DNA of 64,000 nucleotides, taken from positions 186,001 to 250,000 of the IMG/VR virus record IMGVR_UViG_3300017991_005548; one strand, given 5' to 3'. Shown piece by piece: positions 8,656 through 49,959 of this stretch. The notes below the pieces were generated by a model that did no database searches, was not told the DNA's origin, and was given only the letters and a program-made list of their open reading frames with translations. The position numbers were made by a program, and so were the translations under genes. Within the stretch, counting starts at the first letter, position 1. Each line of letters opens with the position of its first letter.

Positions 8656-9666
8656 TTAGTCTTCCTTATCGTTTAACTTTTTTCTTTCTTGGTTTTTGAC
8701 TTTTTTGACACAACGCTCATATTTTTCAGGATCTTTGTCCTTATCGACTGTAGTGTGGCAAACTGCCCAAGGATTGTACTCAAAACTTTCAGCTTCTTCA
8801 GTTGACTTTTTCTTGGCGGTACAAACACTACATTGTCCAGCATCGCTCTCTTTCTTCTTTTTGCCTTTTCTTTTTCTTTTGGCGACATGTTGTGGGTCTT
8901 CTTTCTCAAGAAAAATTTGAGAATCGAGCTTACCTGATGGATTCTTGCCATGAGGTTGGTTCATGATCTTCCCAGGTTTACAAATTTTGATAATCCTGCC
9001 CTTACCACTCGCCAATGGGTAGTCTTCTACTCTTGGTGGAACATAAGATGCAAACTTATCTCTTATTGTTTTGAGTTTTTCAAGTAGGTTGGTGTATTTT
9101 TTGTCATACTCTTCCCAATGTTGGACGAACTTATCATCAACACCTCTCATCTCTTCCATTTCCTCATCAAGTCCTTCAGTCTCCTCACCAATACTTCTTT
9201 CAAGAAGTTTAATGAATTGATTCATGTCAACAAGTTTACTTGAGAAAAGGTCATAAAGATCTTTGTCGAATTTGTCCCCCATACTACTTTGAGAATGCCA
9301 AAGTCGATGATTATCTAGGAACAGAGCTTCTTCAAGAGGCTTCCCACTCAAAAGCTTGTAATAAATTCTTCTTGCAAGATAATCAGAACTTTCTGGTGCT
9401 TCATGAGAGAAGCCATTGAAGTATTCAGATTCTTGGGCTGTTTCAACAAATAACTTAATCAATTTGGTCATTTCTTCGTAAGACACAAACCTTTCCTGAC
9501 TATTAACCCAATTCTTGATAGTTCCTTCATCTACATACAAGTCACATTTTGGGCAATATCTCCCCTTCTCGTAACCATCACCCTCAGGGGTTTTCTTTTT
9601 AACCCAATAGGATTTATGATCAAGTATATTGCATCCAGAATCTTGTGCAGTTCTAATTAGCCTCAT
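8656..9666 (-). CDS. Hypothetical leader-bearing protein (MRLIRTAQ)
   Basis: CPKC and CSVC motifs, C-terminal NPWAVC...YERCV. Confidence 0.75.
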   Translation of the reverse strand: MRLIRTAQDSGCNILDHKSYWVKKKTPEGDGYEKGRYCPKCDLYVDEGTIKNWVNSQERFVSYEEMTKLIKLFVETAQESEYFNGFSHEAPESSDYLARRIYYKLLSGKPLEEALFLDNHRLWHSQSSMGDKFDKDLYDLFSSKLVDMNQFIKLLERSIGEETEGLDEEMEEMRGVDDKFVQHWEEYDKKYTNLLEKLKTIRDKFASYVPPRVEDYPLASGKGRIIKICKPGKIMNQPHGKNPSGKLDSQIFLEKEDPQHVAKRKRKGKKKKESDAGQCSVCTAKKKSTEEAESFEYNPWAVCHTTVDKDKDPEKYERCVKKVKNQERKKLNDKED

Positions 9667-9677
9667 TCCTGCACCTC

Positions 9678-10421
9678 TTAAGATAGAATTTCTTGATAAT
9701 CAACTGAGTAGTTGACAGTTAGCCCAGCCGTGTTGGTTTCAATCTTTATCGCTTCGTCCAAAGAAAGAAGGTGAGGGTCACTATTGTAATGAGACAAATC
9801 AGTATTGGCAGTTTCATCAATTATTGCCGTTTCTGCATCCAAGCCAGGAACCGCAGTATCACTTGTGATTGATGCGGCGAAGCTTGTGTTCTCATTAAGT
9901 CCGAAAAGATGTCCAGCTATACTATACTGATCTGGCAAAGTTCCGTGCTCGTTAAACTCCAAATATTTAATTGTTCCTGAGCTAGGGGTAACTGTATATT
10001 CCCCAGTTGCGGCATCATATGCTACTGTAAAAGTCAAGCCCAATGCACTAAATGCTGAATTAGCATCCATTTGAGTTTCGAGTTCAGTTGCAAGTTCAGT
10101 ACCTGTGTAGAATCCAGTGTCTAATGTGATCTTCTGAGGTAACGTTTGAGGTGTCTGGAACCAAAGAAAATCATTTAAGTTTTCAAGAACGCTCCTGCCA
10201 CCAATAATACTTGCAGAATAATCTTTTGCGTTAGCATTGCTGAAGGCAAACTTAATGCCAACCACTTTCCAGTCGAGATTAGGAGAAAGTACTGTATCAA
10301 TAGCTGAAGCAGTAATATCAGCAACACCTTTGAGACTTTTTACGGTATCTTTCTTAGTTATCGCATCGACAGGAGTTGGCAAAGCTCTGAACACTCTATT
10401 AGGATAATATTTTATGGCCAT
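9678..10421 (-). CDS. Probable virion structural protein, 247 aa
   Basis: Ala/Thr/Ser beta-rich composition; first gene after an AGG-N19-GAA motif. Confidence 0.65.
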   Translation of the reverse strand: MAIKYYPNRVFRALPTPVDAITKKDTVKSLKGVADITASAIDTVLSPNLDWKVVGIKFAFSNANAKDYSASIIGGRSVLENLNDFLWFQTPQTLPQKITLDTGFYTGTELATELETQMDANSAFSALGLTFTVAYDAATGEYTVTPSSGTIKYLEFNEHGTLPDQYSIAGHLFGLNENTSFAASITSDTAVPGLDAETAIIDETANTDLSHYNSDPHLLSLDEAIKIETNTAGLTVNYSVDYQEILS

Positions 10422-11394: not shown

Positions 11395-11469
11395 TGGTGC
11401 CCCTGCTGGGACTCGAACCCAGATTAGCAAGGTTAGAGCTTGCCGCTTTTGCCTTTAAGCTACAGAAGC
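11395..11469 (-). tRNA. Amber suppressor tRNA, anticodon CUA
   Basis: GCTTCTG TA GCTT AAAGGCAA AAGC G GCAAG CT-CTA-AC CTTGC TAAT CTGGG TTCGAGT CCCAG CAGGGGC A CCA: full cloverleaf with encoded CCA. Confidence 0.92.
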
Positions 11470-17030: not shown

Positions 17031-17616
17031 AGTCGCTTCATACGTTGAGGCATTAAATGTAGCCAATATGGATGGCGAGATAAAGAAACCAGAAGTGCTT
17101 GGAGTTTTGCAATCTCTTCCATCCCCAAATCACATCAAAAGATACTTATCAAATGAAGAAGCAAGAGTCTTGTTTGAAAGCATCCGATGGATTTGGAAAG
17201 AAACAAGTGGTAAAGATATTAGTGAGACATTTAATTTCGAGCCTGCTCCAGAATCATTGCTAGGAAATTACTGGATGCTAAGGAATGGTCTGATCTTTCA
17301 TGGTATCAACCATTATGGCATCATTAAAAGAAATATGACGCTCTTTTCTAACGTCCTGAAGTTAGAGCCGTTTGTACTGCATCAGAAGCTTGCAGGCATA
17401 CCACAAGACCTAATTAAGTACGTTATAGACAATGGGGGGATGAGAATCTTCGTTACGGCTGACAAAAGAGCATATTTCCAAATGAATGATCAGGTTTATG
17501 CCAATTGGGGTAGGGCCAAAGTTAAAGGACTGGACTTCGGAAACAAAGTGGTCAAACTTGTTGACCCCACTACCCGATTTGACGGTTGGAACTCTGGAAT
17601 TACCTTAAAACTCTAG
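17008..17616 (+). CDS. Hypothetical protein, 202 aa
   Basis: Coupled to cca; convergent stop overlaps the next gene (CTAG). Confidence 0.7.
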   Translation: MEDVTANEVASYVEALNVANMDGEIKKPEVLGVLQSLPSPNHIKRYLSNEEARVLFESIRWIWKETSGKDISETFNFEPAPESLLGNYWMLRNGLIFHGINHYGIIKRNMTLFSNVLKLEPFVLHQKLAGIPQDLIKYVIDNGGMRIFVTADKRAYFQMNDQVYANWGRAKVKGLDFGNKVVKLVDPTTRFDGWNSGITLKL

Positions 17617-19370
17617 TTCATAAAGAACGGGTCATCATCATCGTCGTCGTCATCAAATTCTACAGGTGGCAGATCTTCCTCAGGATGTTTTCTCTTAGGT
17701 GGCAATGGTTCGTCTTTCGTTGAAGGGCCAAACAATGATGCAAGTTCTGCTTCAAAATCTACATCATCCCATATCAACTCATCAAGATCTTCTTCTGCAC
17801 CAGGAGAAAGTGGGTCTGATGGATCAACTTCTGCACCATCGATAGCATCTCCAGTACCTTCATCAATGTCACCAGCATCTTTGTCTTCTTCATCTGTTTC
17901 GGTTTCCCAGAAACCAGTTTCATCCAACTGATCTTTGAATCGATTCAGAATTTCTTTCGCTTCTTCTTGATCACTAATAATATAACTTGATGCTTCGAAA
18001 AGCTCTTGTACTGGTCCAGCACCCATATATCCAACCAATCCTAATCCAACGATATCTTCTGGTTTACATTGCATGAATCTTCTGAAGTTCTCAGGACCAA
18101 TCTGCATTTGCATTTGCTCATTTACCAATTCATCTGATTCTTTTAGAATGGCAATCGCCTCTTCCATCTCCAAAGGACGTTGTCCTCTGCTTGCTCTAGA
18201 CTCATTGTCCAATTGGTGATCAGTTGCTTTTGAGAAAATACCCTTGGTAAGTTCCTGACAAATAATAATAAAGTTCATACCTTGAGCTACAGTGTTACCT
18301 TCATCATCATTATGACTCCAACCAGTTCCTTTTTGGCCTAACTGATCAGCCATCATCCTAACCATCTCTGGATCGATGTAATAAAAATGCTGACACATCA
18401 AATTAGAGAACTTTTCATAAAGTCCTAAGAGTTGAGGATTAATGTCATTGATCGCACCTTGGACTTCTTCCATCTCAGTTACATCAAATAATTCATTAAG
18501 TCCTGCGCCTTGAGCCAATGAATTCATGATGATGCGTTTGTTAATTTCACCTTCAAGTTCTGGAGTTATTTCAATATCTACTTCTGGGAAGTCTTCTTCA
18601 CCTGAAGGACCCATCTCTTCCATATATTTGATTTCTAACTCATCCCTATCAACATTCCATTTACGAGAGATAACGTCTTTTGCGAGGTCCATCAACTGCT
18701 CTTCATTTCCTTGTTCCAAAGCTTGGATTTCTCTAAGGAGTCCAAGAATCTGCATCATAACTTGTTGAATGTTAGTGTTTACAGGGATATCCTTCTCTTC
18801 TGCAATATTCGTAATATATTCATAGTTTGCGCGAGCTAGTTCATCACCATAATGAGAAAGCACTGGATTTTGAGAAAGGATATTGTTTTGAGGAATATCT
18901 TGCCAGAAATTTCTTACACCTCTTTGTACTGAGGCATCGTAATCAGCGGCGGCGACCTTCTGTTCAAGAAGACGGATTTCGTAACCACTTATCTTTTTTT
19001 TTAACTCCGAAGTAATGGTCGGCAAGTTATCAGGGGATACTTGTGCGGCCAATGGAAGATCTTCTTCTGGTTCTTCAGCTTTAGGTTTTGGTTGTACGAT
19101 AGGTTTAGGATTACGTGGTCTTCTTTTCCCAGGTTTTCCAGGCTTAGTCTTTTCTCCTGGTGTAGTTCTGGGTTTGGTTGTTGGAGCGGCTGGAGCAGGT
19201 CCTGATCTTTCGGTTGATGGAGCAGGTTCAGCTTCTCTTACCATATCTTCTGCTTGAACAACTAAATTGCCATCTTCGTCTAGCCATCCAGCTTTTTTAC
19301 CAAATTCTTCCCAATCTTTTTGAGACAATTTAACGGTCTTTTTGCCATTGGCGTTTTTTATAATTTTCAT
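17613..19370 (-). CDS. Leader-bearing protein, 585 aa (MKIIKNAN), Pro/Lys-rich linker, acidic tail
   Basis: Long ORF after an AGG-N19-GAA motif. Confidence 0.8.
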   Translation of the reverse strand: MKIIKNANGKKTVKLSQKDWEEFGKKAGWLDEDGNLVVQAEDMVREAEPAPSTERSGPAPAAPTTKPRTTPGEKTKPGKPGKRRPRNPKPIVQPKPKAEEPEEDLPLAAQVSPDNLPTITSELKKKISGYEIRLLEQKVAAADYDASVQRGVRNFWQDIPQNNILSQNPVLSHYGDELARANYEYITNIAEEKDIPVNTNIQQVMMQILGLLREIQALEQGNEEQLMDLAKDVISRKWNVDRDELEIKYMEEMGPSGEEDFPEVDIEITPELEGEINKRIIMNSLAQGAGLNELFDVTEMEEVQGAINDINPQLLGLYEKFSNLMCQHFYYIDPEMVRMMADQLGQKGTGWSHNDDEGNTVAQGMNFIIICQELTKGIFSKATDHQLDNESRASRGQRPLEMEEAIAILKESDELVNEQMQMQIGPENFRRFMQCKPEDIVGLGLVGYMGAGPVQELFEASSYIISDQEEAKEILNRFKDQLDETGFWETETDEEDKDAGDIDEGTGDAIDGAEVDPSDPLSPGAEEDLDELIWDDVDFEAELASLFGPSTKDEPLPPKRKHPEEDLPPVEFDDDDDDDDPFFMN

Positions 19371-19432: not shown

Positions 19433-20383
19433 TTATGGATTTACTTCTAGCCCCATTCTTGCATATTCTTCTAGATTTATCGCTGGATTTGAGGCTTTGA
19501 CTTTTACAAAAGTCGAATGGTCACATTCTTTCCACAAATCTTCTCTATCCTCTCCCCCTTCAAAGATTATCATATCATAATCTATGTGTGCGGGAGTCAT
19601 CCACTCTCCATTATGCCAAATCTGGAAATCCACATCTGCATCTCTATATTGGTTCAACTTGTTGATATGGACTTCTGCATAAAGGAAATCTGGTGGTTTT
19701 TCAATTTTTAATGTATATTTATTATAGCCTGCTGGGACTATCCAAGGGTTTTGGAAAACAAAATACAAATCTTTTGAAACTTTTAACAAATCACCTCTTT
19801 GTTGAACCCAATTCCCCTTTTCATACCAATTCTTATTTTGAGAGAATGAAACAATTCCCCTTCTAACAACATTTTGCTTATCCTTATATGTCCCATAATA
19901 TCCTGATTTAGCAATGGGACTGTAAAAAGTCAGATGACTTCCATCGGCCTCCACTTGTCTTCGAGCGTTATTAAAGGCTCTAACTTCTTCATCTTCCTCT
20001 TCTTCAATAGGATCAGCTTCTTGAGGAGCGTTCGGATCAGCTTCTTGAGGAGCGTTCGGATCAGCTTCTTGAGGAGCGTTCGGATCTATCCCTGCCAGAA
20101 GTTGAGCATTTCGTTCTCTCTCCAATAATTCAAAAAGATCATCTGGTTCATCTATGTCTGGAATTTTCATTTTTCCATCTTTCAACGCATCGTCTATTTG
20201 TTCTGGAGTTAGAGGTTTTTTATAACCTTTTATCTTCCCTTGTTTATCAAGTACTGGTTGCCTTTCTTCTTGCGTCCAGCCTATTTCTTTTAGCCTATTC
20301 TGATATTCTTTACATTCTATATAGTCTGCTCTTTGAGCCTCTTTAAGAAAAGAATAAAATTCAAATTGCTTGTACCAACTCAT
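19433..20383 (-). CDS. Hypothetical protein, 316 aa (MSWYKQ...KEAQ)
   Basis: GGAG SD; internal tandem repeat. Confidence 0.75.
   Translation of the reverse strand: MSWYKQFEFYSFLKEAQRADYIECKEYQNRLKEIGWTQEERQPVLDKQGKIKGYKKPLTPEQIDDALKDGKMKIPDIDEPDDLFELLERERNAQLLAGIDPNAPQEADPNAPQEADPNAPQEADPIEEEEDEEVRAFNNARRQVEADGSHLTFYSPIAKSGYYGTYKDKQNVVRRGIVSFSQNKNWYEKGNWVQQRGDLLKVSKDLYFVFQNPWIVPAGYNKYTLKIEKPPDFLYAEVHINKLNQYRDADVDFQIWHNGEWMTPAHIDYDMIIFEGGEDREDLWKECDHSTFVKVKASNPAINLEEYARMGLEVNP
20010..20086. repeat. 24-bp coding tandem repeat x3 (DPNAPQEA)
   Basis: GGATCAGCTTCTTGAGGAGCGTTC repeated three times. Confidence 0.95.
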
Positions 20384-20399: not shown

Positions 20400-20807
20400 T
20401 TATAACATCATTAAATCACTAAAATCTGTATCTTCTCTTTCAGGTGGGTTACAAAGTTCCTCAAGCTGTTCTACAGAAAGGCTTGGCTTAATATTGTCAA
20501 GTCCTCTGAACTCAACAACTTGATCGGTCCCCTTGTTTTTAAGAACTATGGCGTAAAGATCTCCACTAATGAAGTAAACGGATATATCATTTCTAGCAAG
20601 ATATTCTCTGGCATAAGATTCTGACTGGACACTCCAACCACCTTCTTGACCCAGTTCCATTAGTCTTTTTACACCTGTAACATCTTCTTTCGTAAAATTG
20701 AAGTTTCTGTTTGCAGTTTTTAGCCAACCAGATTTCTGACCCATGACCAACCACTCTTTTTTAGACATTTGAACTGTTGTCTTTCCAGCTTTTCTAACTA
20801 GTTTCAT
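20400..20807 (-). CDS. Leader-bearing protein, 135 aa (MKLVRKAG...WLKTAN)
   Basis: Extended leader shared with 17613-19370 and 24815-25213. Confidence 0.75.
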   Translation of the reverse strand: MKLVRKAGKTTVQMSKKEWLVMGQKSGWLKTANRNFNFTKEDVTGVKRLMELGQEGGWSVQSESYAREYLARNDISVYFISGDLYAIVLKNKGTDQVVEFRGLDNIKPSLSVEQLEELCNPPEREDTDFSDLMML

Positions 20808-20810
20808 TAT

Positions 20811-21092
20811 TTACTCCTCAACATTAGCAACATCTTTTTCAGATGGTGCTTGGCCATGTTCCAGATGCATTTTCATTGCATCACGTAGCTTGAATTTATC
20901 TGTATATCTAACAGTAATTACTCCACCTGGATAAATGAGGTCCCAGCAGATTTCACCATCACAATCTTTATTCCTAATCATCCCTCCAGCATCACGCCAT
21001 CTGTCGATTAGTTCTTCCATTTCTCTTCTAAAAACAAAGACATCATTCTCTCTTTGTAAAAATGGCATCGCTATTTTAATAATCTTCATCAA
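20811..21092 (-). CDS. Leader-bearing protein, 93 aa (MMKIIKIA)
   Basis: First gene after an AGG-N19-GAA motif. Confidence 0.7.
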   Translation of the reverse strand: MMKIIKIAMPFLQRENDVFVFRREMEELIDRWRDAGGMIRNKDCDGEICWDLIYPGGVITVRYTDKFKLRDAMKMHLEHGQAPSEKDVANVEE

Positions 21093-37841: not shown

Positions 37842-40070
37842 TTACTCTTTTGGTGCTTGATTTTGAATAGCCATTTCCTTTTTCATAATTGTCTGCACAA
37901 TTTTACTCATTGCCTGCTGTGGCTGTTTCTCTATCTCACTATCTTTAAACCTTAAAACAGTCCAGCCCATCTGGGCAAGTTGCCTATCTCTTTCTTGGTC
38001 TTTTTGAATCTGTTTTGGAGAATTGTGAAAAATCTCTCCATCTGCTTCAATAATAAGTCTCAAATGAGGGAGGGCAAAGTCTACAGGATGTTCCATATTT
38101 CCTATCATAATCTTATACTGAGGGATAATAGGATATTTAATAATCCCGTCTTTTTGATGTTGAACCATATGATCCATCAATTCTCTTTCAATTTTTGTAA
38201 AAGCGATTCTCCCCTTCTCATCTCTTACCTGTCCATCTTTCCCTTGCGAATAGGAAGATGGTTTTGCGGTCTCTGAACGCATTTTCTTTTGCTCAGAAAC
38301 TAATTTATCTCTGGTTTTCTTTTTCAAAACCTTTCCGCCAAATTGTGATGGATCAGCAACTTCCGCAGTCAATGGCCCTGTTTTTGCCAATACGGGTTCT
38401 CCACCTGTTGGTGCGGCTGGCGCTCCACCGAGATCTCCTCCTGGCTCAATAGGGGGTTCTCCCCCCATACCTCCCATTCCACCTCCAAGATCCATGCCTC
38501 CTGGCATTCCGCCGAAGCCACCACCCATGTCTCCTCCAGGCTGTTGCCCCATACCTTGTCCAAGGGCCATCATTTGAACGGCATCATAGCGTTTTCTTTC
38601 AATTTCTTGATCTGGGTCAATATCAAATGCTTCAAGAACAGTCTGCGCACTAACAAGACCCTTCTCGTACAATTGAATAATAAATGTTCTGTATTGCTGT
38701 TGATCTCTAAGATGCATGGAGTTCCATTTAATCTTAGGAACCAGATACTCTTCTTCTCCCGTCTCAGGATTTGTATCAATAAACCCTTGTCGTTTAGCTT
38801 CTGGGAGATATAGGAAATCTGTTATCCAATCAGCTATTTGACTTCTAAATGTGTCCAACCTGTGAATCATAGCTTCAATACCAACAGAAGCGCTTGCAAA
38901 TGTTGGACCTTCACCATTAAGAAGAGCATTGTTAATCATCATACCATCAAGGACTTCCTGATTGATGAATTCAAACTCATTACTAAGAGTAAGAACTTTG
39001 CCAGAAGCACCCACCCAGTCAAAATCAAATGCATGGTGTGTGACAATGGTAAGGTTAGGGTCATTAGCAGTTTCGGCAAGCTGTGCTTGTACAGCGGCAA
39101 TATCGGCAGGTCCAGCAGGACGTTCATCACTACCGACTTTAACAATCTTAATAGGAACGATTAGACGTTCTGCAACGATCCACTGAGCTACCATGAGCTT
39201 AGTTTTATATGAAAGTATAGGGAATAATCTACGGACCATTCCGATTCCATAACGAGTATATCCACTTTCACCATATTTCAAGTGAGAAACGTTACGATTA
39301 TCTAATCGGATAGGCTGACCTGACGAAACAAGTGCGATTACATCTGGAGAAAGTTTCTCATATCCAGGTGTTTTTCTCTGGACCATATTGATGAGTTCTT
39401 CATCTGGTTTCAAAGCGATAATCGGGTCAGGATTTAAAGGTGGGGTATAGACATCTACAAAGTCAGGGTTAAGGATGACCATTCTTCTGACCGTTCCTCC
39501 CTCATGATCGCAAATAATATCTCCGACCATTCCAGAGCCTCCACAATGCTCACAATGGATTTCTGCAAATGGGAAGCAATCGCCAAGCAAATGGACTTCA
39601 TGACTTATCAAACGACACCATTTAGTCAGTTCGAGTCTTTTTTTGAATTTATCAAAGTATAACTTAATCTCTCTATCTTTACACTCATGTTCCCAATCAC
39701 TCATTGGAAAATAACTGTAGAAATCAATTGCAGAAGCTACCTTGGGTTCGTTTTCATAGAAGAATCTTGCCCATTGATATTGTTCTATTCTTTTACTTGG
39801 GATCTGCCAGTTGATTGGAGTATGAACTGGGGAGAAAAATTGAGGCTGACCATAAATAGTTCCTGCACTTGCTACGGAACTAAATTTCGCCATACCATTT
39901 CCCCATTGGGTACTGGCACCAGTCGTTGGGGCATAGTTTTGTCTTGGGATAGGTCGATATGATTGGTGCTGTGGAACCTCGCTGGTAGCGAGTTTAGCGG
40001 GATCTCTATTTCTTAATGCTCTAAAAGTCTCTTCTAGATTGGTAGTTTGTAGGTGAACTTGCATGCACAC
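37842..40070 (-). CDS. Portal protein fused to a C-terminal DUF559/Vsr-like endonuclease-fold domain
   Basis: VASAIDFYSYFP, LNPDFVDV, LYEKGLVSAQTVLEAFDID portal-like pattern; G/M/P linker; VDFALPHLRLIIEADGEIFH...RDRQLAQMGWTVLRF. Confidence 0.75.
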   Translation of the reverse strand: MCMQVHLQTTNLEETFRALRNRDPAKLATSEVPQHQSYRPIPRQNYAPTTGASTQWGNGMAKFSSVASAGTIYGQPQFFSPVHTPINWQIPSKRIEQYQWARFFYENEPKVASAIDFYSYFPMSDWEHECKDREIKLYFDKFKKRLELTKWCRLISHEVHLLGDCFPFAEIHCEHCGGSGMVGDIICDHEGGTVRRMVILNPDFVDVYTPPLNPDPIIALKPDEELINMVQRKTPGYEKLSPDVIALVSSGQPIRLDNRNVSHLKYGESGYTRYGIGMVRRLFPILSYKTKLMVAQWIVAERLIVPIKIVKVGSDERPAGPADIAAVQAQLAETANDPNLTIVTHHAFDFDWVGASGKVLTLSNEFEFINQEVLDGMMINNALLNGEGPTFASASVGIEAMIHRLDTFRSQIADWITDFLYLPEAKRQGFIDTNPETGEEEYLVPKIKWNSMHLRDQQQYRTFIIQLYEKGLVSAQTVLEAFDIDPDQEIERKRYDAVQMMALGQGMGQQPGGDMGGGFGGMPGGMDLGGGMGGMGGEPPIEPGGDLGGAPAAPTGGEPVLAKTGPLTAEVADPSQFGGKVLKKKTRDKLVSEQKKMRSETAKPSSYSQGKDGQVRDEKGRIAFTKIERELMDHMVQHQKDGIIKYPIIPQYKIMIGNMEHPVDFALPHLRLIIEADGEIFHNSPKQIQKDQERDRQLAQMGWTVLRFKDSEIEKQPQQAMSKIVQTIMKKEMAIQNQAPKE

Positions 40071-40105: not shown

Positions 40106-41437
40106 TTAGAGTTCATCAATTTCGAATGTGTCTACCTCTTCAACCTCTTGAACATCTTGAACACCCATTTCTTCGCCAACTTCATTTAGACCAATCTCAT
40201 CTGCCGCATCCTGAATTGATTCAACTTCACCATTCTCGTCAAGTGCATCAAGGGCTTCAGTAAGATTTGAAATGTCAGTTTTGATAATGACAGTTTGACC
40301 GACCCCTTTCCCAGAAGCAATATCATAATTGCCTTGTGGAGTATTTGGGTCATCTACAAGAATTGTTCCCTGTAAAAGATTGACAGGAACATTCCCACCA
40401 TCTCCCATTGTTTCAGCCGCAAGGTCACTTAACAATCTGTAGGTTGACCTTGAATTTGCTGTTTTGACAGGTTTAACATCAAATGCATAAGCAATTTGAT
40501 CATGTTTCTTCACCATCGTATCAGCAAACTTTCCGATCTGTGCTACGTTCGTTATTGAAGTGTCGTAATGCTCAGAGATCAAATCCAACATATTCTCATA
40601 TCCGATGCCTGCCGCTTTCATATCCATGTAATCAGTAAAGATGCTATAAACAATATCATCAAACCTATTTACAGGGGTCTTACTAGCTGTTTTAACCAAT
40701 TTATTAAAAGAATTGGCAGTCGTCGTTACTTCAAGATCATAAGTCTCATTGCCTCTGGCCTCTTCCAGTCTTCTTTCAGTTGAATACTGATGAGGTCTTG
40801 GCTTTCTGGTCCTTTCATTCAGACCTAATTCCATTTGGTTTCCGCCATCTCTTGGAGCGTCTGGATTGGCAGGAGTACCAGCAGTAGGGTAAACATGGAA
40901 TCTGTCATTGATATATCCACCAACCCATTGTCCTTCTTCTGTTTTATACTCTCTGTAGAATTTGTCCATGACATACATTCTCCAGATAGCTTCCCCACTA
41001 TAAACACGATCAGGATCAGCGTCAAAAGAAATGGCATCTGGAGCATAATGAGTGAAATCAAAAAACTGATCTCTGTCAACTCTCCAAGGAGTGTCTTCAT
41101 TATAAGCATCTACTGCTCTATTCCATTTATTACGCTCTCCTCGCATCCAACCGTTTCTCTGTCTGCTTTGAGCTTTCTTTTCCATATAAACACCTTTATT
41201 TAATGCCTCTGTTAAATTGTGTTTGGACAAAATTTTATACAATACATTAGACGCATCTTCGTCATCATCATTATAGATCGCTGTACAAGCGTCTTTAATG
41301 TCCAACTCATCCTCAATAAAGTCAATGTCAGTAGTTATCTTCACTACCTTCATTAACTCGTTAAATGCATCTCCTAACGTATCTTTATCTCTAATCCAAT
41401 CATTAAGATCATTTGGATTTTTGAAAAAATTCGCCAC
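40106..41437 (-). CDS. Hypothetical protein, 443 aa (GTG start), with KKAQ/KTAS/KTAN motifs
   Basis: Long ORF adjacent to portal. Confidence 0.75.
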   Translation of the reverse strand: MANFFKNPNDLNDWIRDKDTLGDAFNELMKVVKITTDIDFIEDELDIKDACTAIYNDDDEDASNVLYKILSKHNLTEALNKGVYMEKKAQSRQRNGWMRGERNKWNRAVDAYNEDTPWRVDRDQFFDFTHYAPDAISFDADPDRVYSGEAIWRMYVMDKFYREYKTEEGQWVGGYINDRFHVYPTAGTPANPDAPRDGGNQMELGLNERTRKPRPHQYSTERRLEEARGNETYDLEVTTTANSFNKLVKTASKTPVNRFDDIVYSIFTDYMDMKAAGIGYENMLDLISEHYDTSITNVAQIGKFADTMVKKHDQIAYAFDVKPVKTANSRSTYRLLSDLAAETMGDGGNVPVNLLQGTILVDDPNTPQGNYDIASGKGVGQTVIIKTDISNLTEALDALDENGEVESIQDAADEIGLNEVGEEMGVQDVQEVEEVDTFEIDEL

Positions 41438-41441: not shown

Positions 41442-42470
41442 TTATCCTAAATGTTTCTTCAACTCTTCAGTGAAGTGGTCACTAACCATTCTAGAAGGAG
41501 CGGCCTTGGTTTCTTCCCAAGTCCTATTTTCAGATTTAGTTTCTCTCTGAATAGAAGCTTTTCTAGTTTCGTTCTGCTGAGCTAAACTCTCACCAGCAGT
41601 TTTCTCAGGAAGATTTTTGAGGTCAGCTTCGCTATAAGCTCCCATGAAGCTACTACTAACTCCAGAGCCAACGTTCCCAACCTCAGTTGGGAAGACAACA
41701 CCTTGAGCCTCAAATCCATCAGCTTGCATTTCAGCGACCTTTTCTTCCTGCCAAGCTTGATGCTCTCTTTCTCTTTTCTTGGATCTTTCAAAATTATCAA
41801 AGACAAGCTTTTCGCCAGGAGTGAATGTTTCACTTTCTTCAAGCCTTTCAATGGCCCCAGGATCGGCAATAGAATTCTGATTAGGAGCAAGGCTAGGTTG
41901 ATTAGCAATTCTGTAATCCTCTCCACCTCTAATAGGACAAATACCTCCAAGCATAGCAACACCTGGAGCATCGCCTAATTTAGCCTCAGGAGCAACCTGT
42001 TGCCAATTTGCTTCTTTCATGTGGTCCATATTTGTTCTTTCATCGATATGGAACGGATCGCCAAGAACTTCTTTCAGAGCTTCTTCCATTGTGGAAGTCT
42101 GAGGTTCTGCACTGGCAGTCTTAACCATTTGTTCAGATGAAGCCGTTCTCTCTACTACGGATGTAGGATCAATTCCAACAATTCGGTCTGTACCAAGTCC
42201 ACATACAGAAGCGAACTCTTTAAGATGACGAACGTCTCTTTCAGACCAAGTTGAGTTATAGTAATAAGGTTGGTTGTTGGACGCACATTTCTCTATTTGT
42301 TCACATTCTTCGAACAAGCACATCTCATCAACCTTAGAAGCGGCTGTGACATTAAGCCTATCAATGCCAGCTTGAAGCAGTCTTTCATTCTCTTCTACTG
42401 CTTCTAAGTATGTTCCTGCGGTAACCCAATCAGGGACGTTATGAACATCTTGTGTTCTATTAATTTTCAT
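41442..42470 (-). CDS. Hypothetical protein, 342 aa, with several KxAS motifs
   Basis: Two AGG-N19-GAA motifs upstream. Confidence 0.75.
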   Translation of the reverse strand: MKINRTQDVHNVPDWVTAGTYLEAVEENERLLQAGIDRLNVTAASKVDEMCLFEECEQIEKCASNNQPYYYNSTWSERDVRHLKEFASVCGLGTDRIVGIDPTSVVERTASSEQMVKTASAEPQTSTMEEALKEVLGDPFHIDERTNMDHMKEANWQQVAPEAKLGDAPGVAMLGGICPIRGGEDYRIANQPSLAPNQNSIADPGAIERLEESETFTPGEKLVFDNFERSKKREREHQAWQEEKVAEMQADGFEAQGVVFPTEVGNVGSGVSSSFMGAYSEADLKNLPEKTAGESLAQQNETRKASIQRETKSENRTWEETKAAPSRMVSDHFTEELKKHLG

Positions 42471-42852: not shown

Positions 42853-44877
42853 TTATTCCTCTTGAAATCCTTTGGTCTCTTTGAGCTTCTCAACATCCGT
42901 GACAGAGTCCTCGAACTCAACCTGGATTTCTTCAGGATCATCCTTGTAATAATCCCTATCGCCAAGTTTAAGCTCTCCAGTCGTTGCTCCCTTGACAGAA
43001 CCTTCGCTGTTCTCAAGAACCTTGACGAATGATTCAGTTGTCCATGGAATACCTCGGTCATCACCGTACTTATTGAAGTAGTAACGATGAGCCGCCATTT
43101 CAATCATAAGCATCTCAACATCACGAACGGTGAACTTCTTAGTCATTGCCAATTCAGACAACTTTTCGAGATCCAGACCGTTGATTGCTCTCTGGAAGTC
43201 TTCTTGATCCTCAAAACCAATAACATCAACGCCTCGATTGTGCATTCTTCTTGCGCAAGTCTCAAATGTTTCCATCATACTTGCGGAATCGAAGTTACCA
43301 ATGTCAATGGCAAGGTCAGTACGACCAGAACGAAGCAGAGGTCCAGTGAAATTCTCAAGATGGTTCGTAGTCAAAACGAGGAAGATATTTCTTTTAACAA
43401 AAAGATTCTCTTCCTGATTGTTCTGAAGCCAGTTCATGAACTCACTCTCAACCTGCTTATGAGCTTCATGCATTCCGCCACCTCGATCATTGGTGGAACC
43501 CATAGCTCTGTCATACTCATCAATTCGAATGATAATATGACTGGTTGAAGCGATTTTATCCAAAGACTTTCTCATCTGTTCGGAACCCTGACCAATCCAC
43601 TTTGAATGACATGCATTGATGTTGAAGTCCCAAACATCAATATCAAGCAATCCAGCCAAGTGAACGGGAAATGCAGACTTACCAACACCGCCCTGACCAT
43701 ACAGAACAATAACATGAGGCATTCTGGTTCGAAGATCCTCAATGCTTTTATCGAGGACAGACATTTGGTCTCTTGCCTCATTAATCTTCTTGGCTGATTT
43801 ATTCTTGCTCTTCTGATGGATCTCTTTCTTCTCGTCAGAAAGAAGATCAACCTCATCAAAATCACGCATCAACTTCTGAACATCATAGGTGAAGTTACTG
43901 TTCTTTGGACAGATATAGTCTTCCCAAGGTCTTCCCTGCAACTGAGTCAAACCAAAGCCATCCTTCATCAGGTTCTTATTGATCTTTGTTCTCAGAAGTC
44001 TCAGGGCTTCTCCCATGTCAATGTAGTCCTGACCGTTTGCATCTGTTGTAATCGCCCTTGGAAGGCAATATCCAAGAACATCACAAGCTTCACTGTAATT
44101 CAGACCAGCGAGTTTGCGGATTGTCTGGTTCATCTGAGATTCGGTGATCGAAAGACGAATGTTCTTTGCGCTGTAGCTCTTGACGTAAACATTGAAAAGG
44201 TGTTTAACCTCAAACTCGTCAACAGTACCAATCTCAACAACATCGACTTTAAAAGGGAACTTGAGTGGGACATTCGAAATCAGAACCAAAACACATCCAA
44301 GACGAACGGTTGGGTTTCTGAATTTATCAAACAGGAACAAAGCTCTGGTGTCTACAACTCCTGGCTCTTCTGGTTTGCAGAAATCAAGGCAGAAATCGAC
44401 ATTACTAATCAACAGAATTTTATCTCTGCACCCACCAGCTTCAGACTTTTTGCGAAGATCCTTTCTGGTTACAAGGCCATTCTCTTTTCTCCTGATCTCA
44501 CCAGTTTGTTCATTGATATCTGGCTCAGGATCTCCATTTGGCCCATTCTTGATTTTGTAAGCGCCATAGATCAACTCATCAAAGAAACGAACACTTGCTC
44601 CTTTCCCAGGTCTACCATGCTGTAACTCAACAGCATCAAATTTGGTTGTTCCATTGAAGAGTTGCTCTACACAGAACGTTTTCTTCAGGATGGACTGAAC
44701 GAGGTAAGGATTTTCATGATTGACAACGAAATTGACGATACCAGTTATAGAGATGGAGCAAGTAGACTTCATCTCTTTAATTACCTTATTAATACCTGGG
44801 CTGTTTTCCAGCAGGTAAGGCATTCCAGTTTTCTTCTGCTTGTTGTCTTCTGTGGCACTTTTCTTGTCTTCGCTCAT
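42853..44877 (-). CDS. AAA+ ATPase, Ycf46-like (degenerate N-terminal plus active C-terminal domain)
   Basis: LYGQGGVGKS, KWIGQGSE, IIRIDEYDRA, LTTNH...LLRSGRTD. Confidence 0.8.
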   Translation of the reverse strand: MSEDKKSATEDNKQKKTGMPYLLENSPGINKVIKEMKSTCSISITGIVNFVVNHENPYLVQSILKKTFCVEQLFNGTTKFDAVELQHGRPGKGASVRFFDELIYGAYKIKNGPNGDPEPDINEQTGEIRRKENGLVTRKDLRKKSEAGGCRDKILLISNVDFCLDFCKPEEPGVVDTRALFLFDKFRNPTVRLGCVLVLISNVPLKFPFKVDVVEIGTVDEFEVKHLFNVYVKSYSAKNIRLSITESQMNQTIRKLAGLNYSEACDVLGYCLPRAITTDANGQDYIDMGEALRLLRTKINKNLMKDGFGLTQLQGRPWEDYICPKNSNFTYDVQKLMRDFDEVDLLSDEKKEIHQKSKNKSAKKINEARDQMSVLDKSIEDLRTRMPHVIVLYGQGGVGKSAFPVHLAGLLDIDVWDFNINACHSKWIGQGSEQMRKSLDKIASTSHIIIRIDEYDRAMGSTNDRGGGMHEAHKQVESEFMNWLQNNQEENLFVKRNIFLVLTTNHLENFTGPLLRSGRTDLAIDIGNFDSASMMETFETCARRMHNRGVDVIGFEDQEDFQRAINGLDLEKLSELAMTKKFTVRDVEMLMIEMAAHRYYFNKYGDDRGIPWTTESFVKVLENSEGSVKGATTGELKLGDRDYYKDDPEEIQVEFEDSVTDVEKLKETKGFQEE

Positions 44878-45012: not shown

Positions 45013-45687
45013 TTATTTTTCGTAATCTTTTACCATTAACTTGACAAAGTCTTTGGGGTATCCAAGCTGTCTTGACCAGTAATCGTAGATCTTCTTACGA
45101 TTCTTTGGACTGATCTCAGCAAGCTTTACCCAATCATCAGCGGAAGCTTCAACAACTTCATCTTCTTCGTCTTCGGCTTCTACCACTTCATCTTCTTCGG
45201 AAGCTTCAACAGTTTCTTCGGAAGCTTCAACAGTTTCGTTTTCATCAGTTGCACATTTTTGAGTTGGACACTCTTCGCCACCTTCGATAACTTCTTCCTC
45301 AACTTCCATTTCGAATTCCTCTACAGGAGCATCTTCAGTTTCTCCACCAAGACACTCAACAGCATCTTCAATGGCATCCTGTGCTCTTTCGAGACATTCA
45401 ACTGCGGCATCTTCGCCTTCAGCTACTTCTTCGACTTGACCTTCGAATTCAACACCGTCAGTTTCAACAGCATCAGTCTCTGCAAGCTCATCGCCACCCA
45501 TAGCCATGCCACAACCTTGTGCGGCTTCTTTTTCTTCGTAATTAGCCACTACTTGTTTTGCGGCTTCGAAAAGATCATCTCTATATTGTTCCTGTTCGGA
45601 AACTTCTCCTTCATTATTTGAAGCGGTTTTCACCATAACTTTGGGAAGCCAATCCGTAGAACCTTTTCCAGAAGGCATAATTCTCAT
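45013..45687 (-). CDS. Acidic hypothetical protein, 224 aa (scaffold-like)
   Basis: VKTASN near the N-terminus; E-rich repeats. Confidence 0.75.
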   Translation of the reverse strand: MRIMPSGKGSTDWLPKVMVKTASNNEGEVSEQEQYRDDLFEAAKQVVANYEEKEAAQGCGMAMGGDELAETDAVETDGVEFEGQVEEVAEGEDAAVECLERAQDAIEDAVECLGGETEDAPVEEFEMEVEEEVIEGGEECPTQKCATDENETVEASEETVEASEEDEVVEAEDEEDEVVEASADDWVKLAEISPKNRKKIYDYWSRQLGYPKDFVKLMVKDYEK

Positions 45688-47572: not shown

Positions 47573-47574
47573 AA

Positions 47575-49959
47575 TTACTCTCCAAAATCCAATATTTTAT
47601 CTAATTCATACTTCTTAAAAAGTTCCTGGGCTTCCTCTTCATTGAGTGACTCTATCTTTGCCTTCGCAAACTGCAAGAAGTCAACAGAATACTTTTCCAA
47701 AAGAACGGGAGCGTATTTTCCAATAGCTTCCTCTAATTCACTATCAATATCAAGACCAAGCTTGATTGACAAATACAACGCTCTCAATATAATGAATGGG
47801 TTGAATGACAATACATCATCTGCATCCATGACCGTTTCGATATAATTATCTCCATTAAAAGGAGTGATGAACGATCCAGTGTAAGGGTTATATCCTCTAG
47901 CATTAATAGTGAAATCCTTGTTGCAAATATCATGCAATACATGGCTGGAAGAATCAAGATCCTGTTTTTTCATCCATCTCTCGATAGTTGGGATCTTTTG
48001 TCCTCCATTGAAACAAATCTTCACGCCTTTGTGATTAAAACAAAAACATCTAGTTGCTGGATCAATCTCAGAGACCTGTTCTCCCAATTCTTCAGCCAAC
48101 AAACTTCCGAATTTATGGCAGTTTTGGGATGAATCACTTGTAAATTCAAGTTCCTCAACTTCTGGAGATCTGTTCCCAAAAGATTTCTCTCTTGCATAAG
48201 AACCGATAGCATAAACATCTTTGATATCGTATTCATGAGCCACACTCTTTGCGGCATCCATAATGCAACTAATAGCATCTTCAAGCGTTGGTCTGCAACC
48301 AACAACCTTTGACATAATCTCTCTTAGTTGTTCATCATTGTTCTGAATAGCATCTTCGACTTTTTCAATTTCTTCACTACCAACTCCCCTATGAATCCAG
48401 CAGGAGTATATCTCTTCTCCATCGGACTCTCCCAAAGAAAACATATCGACTCCAATAGGACTGCGCCCCATTGACTTTTCAATAACTGACAACATATCTT
48501 CACTACAAACAATCCTAGTTGCCTTCATATCGCCCCTAAGAATGATTGATCGTATTTTTCTCAACATATCAACAATATGTCCAAGCCCACCCGAAGCAAA
48601 ACGTTTTGCAGGATGAGTGTTGCTTAAGTCTCTTGTTGAATCAAACCAACTCTCTGGTTTGAACCTTGGCTCGATCCATCTGTAATAAAACCCCTTGATG
48701 TCATATGTTGGGTTATATCTAGGTTGTGACTTTATCCAGTCCTCTTCTTCTGAAAAACATTCATCTCTGTCATCCCAGGCCATGACTCTGTCACCTAACC
48801 CAGGAATAGTTGATCCATCAGAAATTTCGAGATTATTGTACCACCCAAAAACTGTCGCCATCTTTGTCATCTTTGATGCTTGCTTTAAAGGCATCATCAA
48901 TGGTTGTGGTCTAGTATCTTCCAGAAGATCTTCAGTGATTCTATATCCAGTATCGTCTTTGAGCCTGTCTTTGTCAAGCAATTCTTCAAAAATGAGATCA
49001 GGATCTAATTCCCAATCACCTTCAGTAAATTTCCTCAACTGAACTTCATAGATGTCATGTTCTGGAGATAGGTCTGGAGGGAGTGGAGCCTGATACTGTC
49101 TGCCAAGCATTTCTTCGATTGCTCGATTTTGATATTGATGGGCGATCATACCCCAATCTGGTTGGGCCTGGAAATTTGCTCCATGATCACCATATCTTCC
49201 TGACAAATCAGATCCTGAGGGAGGATAGAATGGAAAGTGGCTTTGAGCTTCTTTATACCAATTATTTGAGGCTCCTTGCCTTAAACTTAGTTCACCCTCT
49301 ATGCTGTATTTCTGCTGAATCTCTCTCATGGCAGATTCAAGTAATGCTGTCTCAACTTGAGTTGGACCTGCTTCGTCTTCTGCCCCTTTAGCATGAGTGG
49401 CTTCGTGAGCCATTGTAGCGGCCATGTGAGCTATCATAAGATCTTGTCTTAGCTCTGCATGCATTTCTGGTGGAACGATGTCCTGAAGGTTCCTAAAGGA
49501 TTGCTCCATCTCATTACGAGTGTCTGCTACATTCAGTCCTAGAACTGATCCTCCTTTACTTTCTAGATCAGCATATACTTGCTGGATTTCATTACGGATA
49601 GTTTCTTGGTCTTTCTCTTCTTTAGTGTCATACGCTCGAAGCATTCCATCTTCTTCGACAATTTCATAACCTCTTGATTCAAGTCTTTTTTGAAGTTCTT
49701 GGGTTTTGACTGCCCTATCTAGTGACGGAACATAAACTCCATAAACACCAGCTTTCGCGAAGTTGAACATATAAACAATATTCTGCAAAAGATTTGAGTC
49801 GAATCGATTGACTAAGTCAACTGATTTCTGGGCATCGCCAAATTGGGAAGAGATGTTGGAGATGTTAACACTTGGGCTTCCGATCAAACTACCTTTATAC
49901 TCTGGAGCATCACCAGAGTAATACCCTCCGTAGTCTTGAGATACTTTTATGATTTTCAT
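47575..49959 (-). CDS. Leader-bearing (MKIIKVSQ) zincin-like metallopeptidase fused to a degenerate CCA/PAP-like nucleotidyltransferase
   Basis: AHEATHAKGAEDE; C-terminal YAIGSYARE..ELEF, NKDFTINA, FNPFIILRA. Confidence 0.7.
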   Translation of the reverse strand: MKIIKVSQDYGGYYSGDAPEYKGSLIGSPSVNISNISSQFGDAQKSVDLVNRFDSNLLQNIVYMFNFAKAGVYGVYVPSLDRAVKTQELQKRLESRGYEIVEEDGMLRAYDTKEEKDQETIRNEIQQVYADLESKGGSVLGLNVADTRNEMEQSFRNLQDIVPPEMHAELRQDLMIAHMAATMAHEATHAKGAEDEAGPTQVETALLESAMREIQQKYSIEGELSLRQGASNNWYKEAQSHFPFYPPSGSDLSGRYGDHGANFQAQPDWGMIAHQYQNRAIEEMLGRQYQAPLPPDLSPEHDIYEVQLRKFTEGDWELDPDLIFEELLDKDRLKDDTGYRITEDLLEDTRPQPLMMPLKQASKMTKMATVFGWYNNLEISDGSTIPGLGDRVMAWDDRDECFSEEEDWIKSQPRYNPTYDIKGFYYRWIEPRFKPESWFDSTRDLSNTHPAKRFASGGLGHIVDMLRKIRSIILRGDMKATRIVCSEDMLSVIEKSMGRSPIGVDMFSLGESDGEEIYSCWIHRGVGSEEIEKVEDAIQNNDEQLREIMSKVVGCRPTLEDAISCIMDAAKSVAHEYDIKDVYAIGSYAREKSFGNRSPEVEELEFTSDSSQNCHKFGSLLAEELGEQVSEIDPATRCFCFNHKGVKICFNGGQKIPTIERWMKKQDLDSSSHVLHDICNKDFTINARGYNPYTGSFITPFNGDNYIETVMDADDVLSFNPFIILRALYLSIKLGLDIDSELEEAIGKYAPVLLEKYSVDFLQFAKAKIESLNEEEAQELFKKYELDKILDFGE

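Follow-up and report, generated by a model that had tools for sequence, protein, structure and literature searches.

Organization of the tagged genes

The window, a 64,000-nucleotide stretch (positions 186,001 to 250,000) of the 476-kb IMG/VR contig IMGVR_UViG_3300017991_005548, contains 68 called genes. Its major capsid protein (MCP) is closest to that of Bacillus phage G, and we regard the contig as that of a phage-G-like megaphage. Around the MCP and prohead-protease genes lies a series of genes whose products share little but their first seven residues, the commonest form being M-K-I-I-K-x-A. Coordinates are given in Table 1.

Table 1. Features of the window that bear, or bear upon, the N-terminal tag (positions of the 64,000-nt window; phi, hydrophobic).
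Position	Strand	Feature	Detail
8656..9666	-	Tagged gene, 336 aa	MRLIRTA; no family hit
17613..19370	-	Tagged gene, 585 aa	MKIIKNA, then the K-L-S-x-K-D-W...G-K-K-A-G-W module
19433..20383	-	Gene with probable variant tag	MSWYKQFEFYSFLKEAQ; NWY-type start, core FLKEA at residue 12 (compare the extended NWY...LKxAQ variants of relatives)
20400..20807	-	Tagged gene, 135 aa	MKLVRKA plus the GW module, then a second core copy, WLKTA, at residue 29
20811..21089	-	Tagged gene, 92 aa	MKIIKIA
21267..21842	-	Tagged gene, 191 aa	MKLIRTA plus a DUF5662 body
22691..23107	-	Tagged gene, 138 aa	MKIIKVA
23109..23390	-	Tagged gene, 93 aa	MKIMKAA
23390..23815	-	Tagged gene, 141 aa	MKLIKIS plus a rhodanese domain (domain match starts at residue 41)
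24815..25213	-	Tagged gene, 132 aa	MKIVKTA plus the GW module, then WMKKA at residue 29
25293..25820	-	Tagged gene, 175 aa	MNWYKKAQ; weak phosphoribosyltransferase-like body
25931..26794	-	Major capsid protein	HK97-type, 287 aa, 55% identical to phage G gp27; N-terminus MINKRSV
27676..27909	-	Tagged gene, 77 aa	MKLIRVS
27906..28157	-	Tagged gene, 83 aa	MKIIKIS
28266..33836	-	Prohead-protease/scaffold-like polyprotein, 1856 aa	Starts MLIKVAL
28398..28439	-	Two motif copies in the polyprotein	AVKTAS and QVKTAG, 45-57 aa from the C-terminus, followed by a conserved tail
33078..33098	-	Motif copy 3 of the polyprotein	MIKTAAL, aa 247-253, just after the protease core at the end of helix 232-252, before a low-confidence break (253-256)
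33177..33695	-	Protease core of the polyprotein	aa 48-220; AF2 pLDDT about 90
33750..33770	-	Motif copy 2 of the polyprotein	MIKTASG, aa 23-29, just upstream of the protease core in a disordered segment; K-T-A-S conserved in all lineages
37842..40070	-	Portal protein	Untagged; C-terminal DUF559/HNH-like domain
40106..41437	-	443-aa protein next to the portal gene	Internal LVKTAS (248) and PVKTAN (324)
41442..42470	-	342-aa protein	Internal MVKTAS (116)
42853..44877		AAA ATPase	
45013..45687	-	224-aa protein	VMVKTAS at residue 19 (possible longer propeptide)
47575..49959	-	Tagged gene, 794 aa	MKIIKVS; internal NWYKEAQ at residue 234
50917..51978		Trypsin-like peptidase	

A preliminary description, made from the sequence alone, had listed 13 N-termini of this kind, and this observation is confirmed: all 13 are present on the minus strand. 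In one case (21092) the codon is TTG, and the ATG that gives MKIIKIA lies at 21089; in another (23107) the start is an internal ATG of the longest ORF, but one that abuts the stop of the upstream gene (ggttaATG). The gene at 25820, which carries the NWYK variant of the tag, had been overlooked, as probably had that at 20383.

To determine whether the shared start could arise by chance, the expression ^M[KR][LIVM][LIVM][KR].[AS] was compared to all called genes. It matches 12 of the 68, while the polyprotein and the gene at 25820 carry variants. Because the same core occurs only 3 times internally in 20,401 aa, 0.01 matches are expected at gene starts (binomial P about 1e-33). Only 1 of 2,586 ATGs that are not gene starts matches, and a scan of every ATG-started ORF of at least 30 aa found 14 true gene starts and only 3 other matches. 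Tagged genes are also clustered: 11 of 21 genes between 17.6 and 33.9 kb carry the tag, against 2 of 47 elsewhere (Fisher P = 1.3e-5).

The bodies behind the tag are unrelated by BLASTP, the exception being a module of about 30 aa (K-L-S-x-K-E-W-x3-G-K-K-A-G-W) shared by the genes at 19370, 20807 and 25213. Of the identities previously suggested for the bodies, rhodanese was confirmed by Pfam, which also identified DUF5662 (21842), whereas transglutaminase-like and zincin domains were not recovered. As had been claimed, the strict tag is absent from the N-termini of the actin-like Volactin, GT4, the CCA enzyme, the AAA ATPase, the ABC-type ATPase, RNR, the portal and the MCP, although the N-terminus of the MCP (clade consensus M-[AS]-phi-x-K-x-[GSA]) is a degenerate look-alike.

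The tag is a peptide-level feature

One alternative, named beforehand as a condition that would refute a capsid-targeting signal, is that the motif reflects a translation-initiation bias of AT-rich genomes. The genome is AT-rich (38% GC) and the second codon is AAA in 9 of 12 tags. However, information in the leader sits at codon positions 1 and 2, third positions vary freely and no upstream DNA motif is shared, so selection acts on the peptide. Moreover, the conserved position 7 is a GC-rich Ala or Ser codon and the NWYK variant uses TGG TAT. Across 78 related loci the tag occurs in 6.2% of 1,180 genes, against 0.4% of 1,466 genes in unrelated viral loci of about 35% GC (P = 7e-20); half of these control hits are the window's own genome, and the background in unrelated AT-rich viral loci is about 0.2-0.4%.

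In these relatives the tag persists as interchangeable lineage variants (MKIYRLA, MNWYKKA, MKIIKTAKY; KRLIKKA in phage G, where the tag-bearing proteins are gp10, gp13, gp17, gp20, gp38, gp53, gp56 and gp57). A search of all of IMG/VR with the exact DNA pattern of MNWYKKAQ hit 12 stretches, 8 of them on contigs already in this MCP clade. Modularity is evident among 120 DUF5662 orthologues with bodies 58-73% identical: 87 carry the tag, with Met exactly 6 residues before the Ala in 77 of the 87, while about 10 lack it. The phi-phi pair is interchangeable (WY/IY/II/IV/IF) and the linker varies from 8 to 18 aa. In the AF2 model of the window's DUF5662 protein the first 10 residues average pLDDT 57 (residues 1-3 are below 50) and the first helix starts at residue 7, indicating that the tag is a flexible tail.

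The motif recurs within the prohead-protease polyprotein

The protein at 28266..33836 shows prohead-protease homology: it matches phrog_18299 (head maturation protease) with E = 1e-18 over aa 63-220, the PHROG hits being phrog_18299 and phrog_2774, and is 43% identical to phage G gp19, annotated as head maturation protease (PMC12484599). No Pfam protease family, including the T4-type family, was hit. In 20 polyproteins H94 (in F-T-N-H) and M146 are invariant and S145 and G147 (S-M-G) are at least 90% conserved; a catalytic role for H94 and S145 is inferred. The four best Foldseek matches of the AF2 model in the PDB are HCMV protease (probability 0.89-0.98), but these matches are weak (E about 0.02, TM 0.25-0.37).

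The core of the tag, phi-K-(T/x)-A, is not confined to gene starts. The polyprotein contains 6 copies of phi-[KR]-T-A against 0.29 expected (0 of 2,000 shuffles reached 6). In the 20 relatives K4 is invariant, and A6 and A27 are at least 90% conserved, comparable with the putative catalytic residues. The phi-K-T-A-S copies before the core, after the core (aa 247-253), at about residue 1274 and near the C-terminus (aa 1800-1813) persist where flanking sequence is only about 30% identical. The motif is nonetheless short, and some internal matches (about residues 697, 945 and 1184) sit in conserved helices and may be structural coincidences. The free-standing phage G protease gp19 has copies at residues 8, 42 and 49 before the core and at 273 after it, and the Tunturi_5 protease starts MPIPLKTAN.

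Further internal copies lie in proteins encoded beside the portal and in the protein at 45013..45687. There are none in actin, GT4, CCA, the AAA and ABC-type ATPases, portal or MCP, and RNR shows no enrichment (2 copies against 1.86 expected).

A putative recognition motif of the prohead protease

We suggest that M-x-phi-phi-[K/R]-x-[A/S] is a short linear recognition motif of the head-assembly machinery of phage-G-like megaphages, and most probably the docking or cleavage site of their assemblin-like prohead protease; on present evidence we hold this to be only somewhat more likely than not. In this view the protease is made as the N-terminal domain of a giant scaffold-like polyprotein, and the positions of the motif within it – at its N-terminus, on both sides of the protease core, at further internal sites and about 50 aa before its C-terminus – would allow self-release and piecewise processing inside the prohead. 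At the extreme N-terminus of otherwise unrelated small proteins and enzymes the same motif would mark clients, which would be engaged by the protease/scaffold core during prohead assembly and trimmed by about 7 residues, or by about 33 in the three proteins whose G-K-K-A-G-W module ends in a second copy. What the analysis establishes is the motif, its statistics, its selection at the protein level, its modularity, its conservation across the clade and its placement around and within the polyprotein; that the prohead protease reads the motif, that cleavage occurs (and occurs after Ala) and that tagged proteins reside in heads are inferences, while ejection into the host is speculation.

Some features fit this view less easily. 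AF2 leaves residues 1-29 of the polyprotein undocked, and the residue after Ala is not conserved in the leaders. The rigid distance from Met1 is not required of a simple cleavage site, and hints that a free N-terminus is part of what is read. Tag-bearing arrays also lie more than 10 kb from head genes in relatives, and 65-82 kb from the head module in phage G; the link to head genes is therefore an enrichment, not a rule.

The preliminary description had proposed a modular tag, analogous to that of T4 internal proteins, that loads small enzymes into the head for ejection into the host, and this interpretation is partly supported. A modular, protein-level signal tied to the head module, carried by the prohead-protease protein and present on some orthologues but not others, is borne out, but the motif is more than a leader: its recurrence at conserved internal sites is the pattern expected of a protease recognition or cleavage site. 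That tagged proteins are in virions, that the tag is removed and that they are ejected are not supported by any of the present data.

Other readers of the tag can be envisaged. The motif might dock, uncut, to a head component (MCP inner surface, scaffold or portal) in the manner of an encapsulin cargo-loading peptide, with the repeats in the polyprotein providing multivalent attachment to the shell. The HK97-fold shell, the repetition along a scaffold-like protein, the look-alike N-terminus of the MCP, the fixed register and the flexible tail suit such an epitope, yet copies that tightly bracket the protease core in three architectures (fused, free-standing in phage G, and Tunturi_5) look more like self-processing sites, and phages whose MCPs are 93% identical use different variants (MKIIKxA against MKIYRLA), so that the MCP is an unlikely specific receptor. 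We consider docking alone unlikely, and slightly less likely still that the tag is read by an AAA+ unfoldase, a Clp-type protease or a chaperone that would time the degradation, folding or delivery of phage proteins independently of capsid loading. This would accord with the fixed N-terminal register, with the AAA ATPase and trypsin-like peptidase encoded in the window, with the ClpP/ClpX that phage G encodes and that are detected in particles (PMC12484599), and with arrays distant from head genes; it does not explain the conserved copies at the N-terminus and around the core of the prohead protease, the near-C-terminal copies, the enrichment in portal-adjacent proteins or the clustering around the MCP.

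A nucleic-acid-level feature (AT-rich early codons, a downstream box or a recombination boundary for gene cassettes) is effectively refuted by the codon and background data above and by conserved internal copies far from any start codon. A secretion or membrane-targeting signal (Sec, Tat, lipoprotein or pilin-like) is equally improbable: basic residues lie near the N-terminus, but no hydrophobic core of 10 or more residues follows, the downstream linkers being acidic or polar, and in the modelled DUF5662 protein the first soluble helix starts at residue 7. A bolder possibility, which we regard as doubtful although not excluded, is that the seven residues are a portable and sufficient loading signal by which these megaphages would pack dozens of freely swappable enzymes (tagged bodies include rhodanese, DUF5662, phosphoribosyltransferase-like proteins and P-loop kinases) into their very large heads and deliver them with the DNA. 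The tag would then be an address label for gene cassettes, defining a megaphage-specific injected proteome across a whole environmental clade.

Relation to known systems

No description of this tag was found in the papers searched, although comparable signals exist. The capsid-targeting sequences of T4 internal proteins, removed by prohead protease gp21 (PMC3012670; PMC9958956; Mullaney & Black 1996, cited in PMC10052503), are likewise short N-terminal peptides shared by unrelated proteins, with the same short motif present in the core/scaffold proteins that the protease processes and in the protease protein itself. The analogy of a targeting sequence that ends in the protease site, here a putative one inferred from the recurrence of the motif, fits mechanistically, but descent from the T4 module does not: the protease has no Pfam match, its PHROG hits are those given above, and the MCP is HK97-type and closest to that of phage G. 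The system works like that of T4 at most, and is not a member of it. The sequence also differs (basic-hydrophobic, ending in Ala/Ser), the tag is only about 7 residues in a fixed register from Met1, the protease is fused to a giant polyprotein, and its best (weak) fold match is to herpesvirus protease. In the giant phages phiKZ and SPN3US (PMC5694885; PMC7411985; PMC10052503) many head-internal or ejection proteins are marked by one short protease consensus; there, propeptides vary in length and the consensus differs, whereas here most copies sit at the very N-terminus and the clade is unrelated.

The layout of the motif copies in the polyprotein, putative cleavage sites only, mirrors that of the release and maturation sites of the herpesvirus assemblin-scaffold precursor (pUL26; PMC4498786), an N-terminal serine-protease domain fused to scaffold that is cut after Ala, with a hydrophobic residue upstream, at a release site just after the protease and a maturation site near the C-terminus. 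The register differs (phi-K-x-A here; YLQA-T and VQA-S in PrV), and here there are many more internal copies, a 1.6-kaa C-terminal part and N-terminal copies on dozens of accessory proteins. In staphylococcal phage 80alpha, capsid and scaffold proteins share an N-terminal motif that is removed after an Ala, but by the host cysteine protease that processes ribosomal protein L27; the motif is host-derived and only two phage proteins are known to carry it. Encapsulin cargo-loading peptides direct diverse enzymes into an HK97-fold shell by a short terminal peptide, as the tag may do here, but are usually C-terminal, differ in sequence and are not cleaved.

The N-terminal tag

To determine whether a short leader is shared by unrelated genes of the window – which is almost entirely minus-strand coding, at 38% GC – gene starts were compared with a strict pattern, ^M[KR][LIVM][LIVM][KR].[AS]. 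The pattern matches 12 of 68 called genes. The same core is found only three times internally in 20,401 residues, which gives 0.01 expected at gene starts (P about 1e-33), and just 1 of 2,586 other ATGs matches. A scan of all ATG-started ORFs found 14 genuine gene starts, including MLIKVAL on the protease protein and MNWYKKAQ, which the preliminary description had missed; a further start, MSWYKQFEFYSFLKEAQ, is a probable extended variant. The observation made in that description holds: every N-terminus it listed is present, with two small corrections (the position of the ATG for MKIIKIA, and a start that is coupled to the stop of the upstream gene).

Paralogy does not account for the shared leader. 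After removal of the first eight residues, all-against-all BLASTP shows the proteins to be unrelated, except for a module of about 30 aa (K-L-S-x-K-E-W-x3-G-K-K-A-G-W, or K-L-S-K-x-E-W-x3-G-K-K-A-G-W) that is shared by three of them. This second portable module follows the tag within the N-terminal ~33 aa, and in two of the three proteins ends in a second phi-K-x-A copy; in relatives (loci L006, L008, L009 and L091, where L-numbers denote individual loci of the comparison) it also occurs without the tag, in proteins that start MKIKLSKSQWEEMGKKAGW. Searches of the tagged proteins against Pfam, PHROG and NCBIfam gave only rhodanese, DUF5662 (the first two confirmed by Pfam) and a weak PRTase hit: the zincin and transglutaminase-like bodies proposed in the preliminary description were not recovered.

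The signal is at the protein level and not in the nucleic acid. Across the 12 strict tags Lys is encoded by AAA/AAG, Arg by AGA/AGG, Ile by ATT/ATA/ATC, Leu by CTA/TTA/CTC, Ala by all four GCN codons and Ser by TCA/TCT. Information content peaks at codon positions 1-2 and collapses at position 3, while the 60 nt upstream carry no shared motif beyond ordinary Shine-Dalgarno-like purine runs. A DNA-level signal or shared promoter was therefore rejected.

Coordinates of features in the window and in related loci (blank: strand not given)
Feature	Coordinates	Strand
Actin-like protein, Volactin family	1730-2818	-
1048-aa protein with clustered motif copies (aa 241-366)	3396-6542	-
tRNA, anticodon CTA	11395-11469	-
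Tagged protein with G-K-K-A-G-W module	17613-19370	
Probable extended tag variant, MSWYKQFEFYSFLKEAQ	start 20383	
Tagged protein with G-K-K-A-G-W module	20400-20807	
ATG of MKIIKIA	21089	
Tagged DUF5662 protein	21267-21842	
EF-hand ORF	21914-22348	-
111-aa ORF ending in TAG	22355-22690	-
Start coupled to the stop of the upstream gene	23107	
Tagged rhodanese protein	start 23815	
Tagged protein with G-K-K-A-G-W module	24815-25213	
Tagged gene, MNWYKKAQ	start 25820	
MCP	25931-26794	
Portal (DUF559 / MTES_1575 domain at aa ~630-734)	37842-40070	-
Portal-adjacent protein, two phi-[KR]-T-A copies	40106-41437	
Portal-adjacent protein, phi-[KR]-T-A copy	41442-42470	
Protein with phi-[KR]-T-A copy	45013-45687	
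Class II (B12-type) ribonucleotide reductase with intein	58172-61675	-
Tandem array of tagged genes in L010	11979-16092	
Tandem array of tagged genes in L011	12895-14190	
Tandem array of tagged genes in L064	12057-14350	
Tandem array of tagged genes in L085	6985-8820	

Genomic setting

The window is part of IMGVR_UViG_3300018080_008436, a 476-kb contig. Its MCP is of HK97 type and 55% identical to Bacillus phage G gp27. Upstream on the coding strand lie the portal, a 1305-aa protein, and an 1856-aa protein whose residues 48-220 are a head-maturation protease (phrog_18299, E = 1e-18; 43% identical to phage G gp19); a PDB sequence search with the N-terminus of the protease found nothing useful. 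Tagged genes concentrate around these head genes (11 of 21 genes in 17.6-33.9 kb, against 2 of 47 elsewhere; P = 1.3e-5). By contrast, actin-like Volactin, GT4, the CCA enzyme, the AAA ATPase, DUF192, a trypsin-like peptidase, the intein-bearing class II RNR and an ABC-type ATPase are all untagged.

Conservation of the tag among related phages

At least 170 IMG/VR loci encode this capsid type, and 80 loci around related MCPs were examined. The exact variant of the window is confined to its own genome and a near-identical one, but a broader tag, M-x-phi-phi-[K/R]-x-[A/S], is pervasive with lineage-specific flavours: MKIYRLAQ (L003), MKIFKISQ (L008), MNWYKKAQ in eight consecutive genes (L010) and in four (L011), MKIIKTAKY in four consecutive genes (L064), and MKI[IL][KR]TANY and MRVIRTAG. 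The pattern phi-[KR]-x-[AS] starts at residue 4 in 5.4% of genes, against 0.7% internally. A 398-kb megaphage of 50% GC uses MDHNRWKTA and MDQNRWKAA. In L010, L011, L064 and L085 the tagged genes form tandem arrays of 4-8 small, mutually unrelated genes that all start with the same tag variant (for example MNWYKKAQ), and look like a cassette region for tagged accessory genes.

In the first 100 kb of phage G, the part of that genome examined, KRLIKKA/S-type starts are found on gp5, 9, 10, 12, 13, 17, 20, 38, 53, 56 and 57, with fewer further along the genome (gp111, 123, 126, 141). Within the same 100 kb only MCP, protease core and portal match window genes, and tagged genes could thus not be compared one by one.

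A generic AT-rich start bias, which the preliminary description had named as a possible refutation, was tested against control loci. As a negative control we used loci from a loose scan of the collection for MKIIKx[AS], a scan that gave unrelated single matches and was in itself uninformative. With a register-fixed pattern, 73 of 1,180 clade genes match, against 6 of 1,466 in 119 unrelated viral loci of about 35% GC – and three of those six are the window's own genome (P = 7e-20). The bias was rejected. The exact MNWYKKAQ coding pattern occurs in 12 stretches of IMG/VR, 8 of them on contigs already in this MCP clade.

Modularity

Among 120 close homologues of the DUF5662 protein, 87 carry the tag, and in 77 of those 87 Met lies exactly six residues before the Ala/Ser. 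The hydrophobic pair is interchangeable (WY 50, IY 18, II 10, and others), an acidic linker of 8-18 residues precedes the conserved body, and about ten homologues start directly at the body. AF2 models the body at pLDDT 92, while the first 10 residues average 57: the tag is therefore an exposed, separately selected add-on. One tagged homologue (P0038) is deposited as a protein of a Candidatus Paceibacterota MAG; either a phage contig was binned into a CPR genome, or this hints at the host range of the clade.

Internal copies of the motif in the protease polyprotein

The new element is a set of internal copies tied to the protease. The giant protease protein almost always begins with the tag. 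In 20 aligned N-terminal regions K4 is invariant and A6 is at least 90% conserved, which is comparable with the presumed catalytic H94 (invariant) and S145 (at least 90%). A second copy (MIKTASG in the window, aa 23-29; 'K-T-A-S' in all lineages) lies just upstream of the core in a segment that AF2 leaves disordered, and a third (MIKTAAL, aa 247-253) ends the helix that follows the core, just before a low-confidence break. Further conserved copies lie at about residue 1274, a site that in distant lineages is an 'IKTAS...YKxA' doublet, and near the C-terminus, where AVKTAS and QVKTAG lie 45-57 residues from the end and are followed by a conserved tail. Several relatives (L020, L033, L059, L040 and L023; columns ~210-400 of the alignment of polyprotein N-terminal regions) carry an intein-like insertion exactly at the conserved S-M-G (putative catalytic Ser) motif.

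The polyprotein of the window has six phi-[KR]-T-A copies against 0.29 expected, a number reached by none of 2,000 shuffles; the window proteome has 15 against 2.4. The remaining copies are either tags or lie in two proteins beside the portal (one of which has two), in one further protein, or at the end of the G-K-K-A-G-W module. In addition, a 1048-aa protein with no family hit has five phi-phi-[KR]-x-[AS] copies clustered within 125 residues (0.8 expected for the whole protein).

Bracketing of the protease core holds in other architectures. Free-standing phage G gp19 has copies at residues 8, 42 and 49 before the core and at 273 after it. The protease of the distant Tunturi_5 phage starts MPIPLKTAN, and its MCP carries LLKSAAG at residue 18. 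MCP N-termini in the window and in L003-L081 follow M-[AS]-phi-x-K-x-[GSA], a degenerate version of the tag, while more distant relatives (Tunturi_5, L215; loci L214 and L215) have phi-phi-K-[ST]-A-A-G at residue about 16-18 of the MCP, which may be a short MCP propeptide boundary.

Interpretation

A short motif sits at the protease's own N-terminus, on both sides of its core, along the scaffold-like remainder, near the C-terminal tail, in portal-adjacent proteins and at the N-terminus of many accessory proteins. That is the pattern expected of a prohead-protease recognition/cleavage site. There are precedents for both placements. Herpesvirus proteases are N-terminal domains of scaffold precursors, and cut after Ala at a release site just behind the protease and at a maturation site near the scaffold C-terminus (YLQA-T and VQA-S in PrV; PMC4498786), while T4 internal proteins carry a short targeting sequence that ends in the site of the prohead protease. 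The AF2 model of the N-terminal 350 residues has HCMV protease as its four best PDB matches (probability 0.89-0.98), although the match is weak (E about 0.02 and low TM).

We consider it somewhat more likely than not that the motif is a docking/cleavage motif whose N-terminal copies act as ultra-short propeptides and targeting tags. The motif, its excess over chance, its selection at the peptide level and its positions around the protease follow directly from the sequences; recognition by the protease, cleavage and residence in the head are inferred from sequence alone, and ejection into the host is no more than speculation. The earlier proposal – a modular tag, analogous to that of T4, that loads many small enzymes into the head for ejection – is thus partly supported. 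Binding without cleavage, and a tag for an unfoldase or degradation machine, are the rival readings that remain; initiation bias and a secretion signal are effectively excluded. The strict distance from Met1 suggests that a free N-terminus is read, which a plain cleavage site would not need, tagged arrays also occur away from head genes, and some internal matches may be structural coincidences.

In its inferred mechanism the motif is like the T4 CTS and the herpesvirus release and maturation sites, but it is not a member of the T4 system. Searches of the literature accessible to us with the tag strings gave no relevant papers, and those on capsid-targeting or prohead-protease motifs in jumbo phages returned only T4 and SPN3US work; nothing of the sort was found described for this clade, and the text of a 2025 multi-omics study of phage G does not mention the tagged gps. 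If the tag marks prohead-protease clients, it gives a one-line sequence rule for predicting the head-internal, and possibly injected, proteome of an uncultivated megaphage clade, and the rule also applies to the only cultivated member, phage G, which grows on a laboratory Lysinibacillus host and where it can be tested directly. It would extend the T4 capsid-targeting principle to an unrelated HK97-type lineage that uses an assemblin-like protease-scaffold fusion, and would tighten the parallel between phage and herpesvirus capsid maturation. A tag of 7 residues would also be a very compact handle for loading cargo into very large capsids. If instead it serves another machine (an unfoldase or a degradation system), it would still be an unusually pervasive phage-encoded sorting signal.

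Other features of the window

The actin-like protein is of the Volactin family (Pfam E = 3e-63), here encoded in a phage-G-like megaphage. The portal protein carries a C-terminal DUF559 / MTES_1575 restriction-endonuclease-like (HNH-PHROG) domain, and the ribonucleotide reductase is interrupted by an intein with a LAGLIDADG endonuclease domain. ARAGORN calls a tRNA with anticodon CTA, an amber-reading suppressor type (labelled tRNA-Pyl), and 11 of 68 called genes end in TAG. The 111-aa ORF ends in TAG and is followed by a frame that stays open for 146 more codons, up to the stop of the EF-hand ORF, whose own start (TTG) is weak: the two may be one gene with an in-frame amber codon read by the suppressor tRNA.
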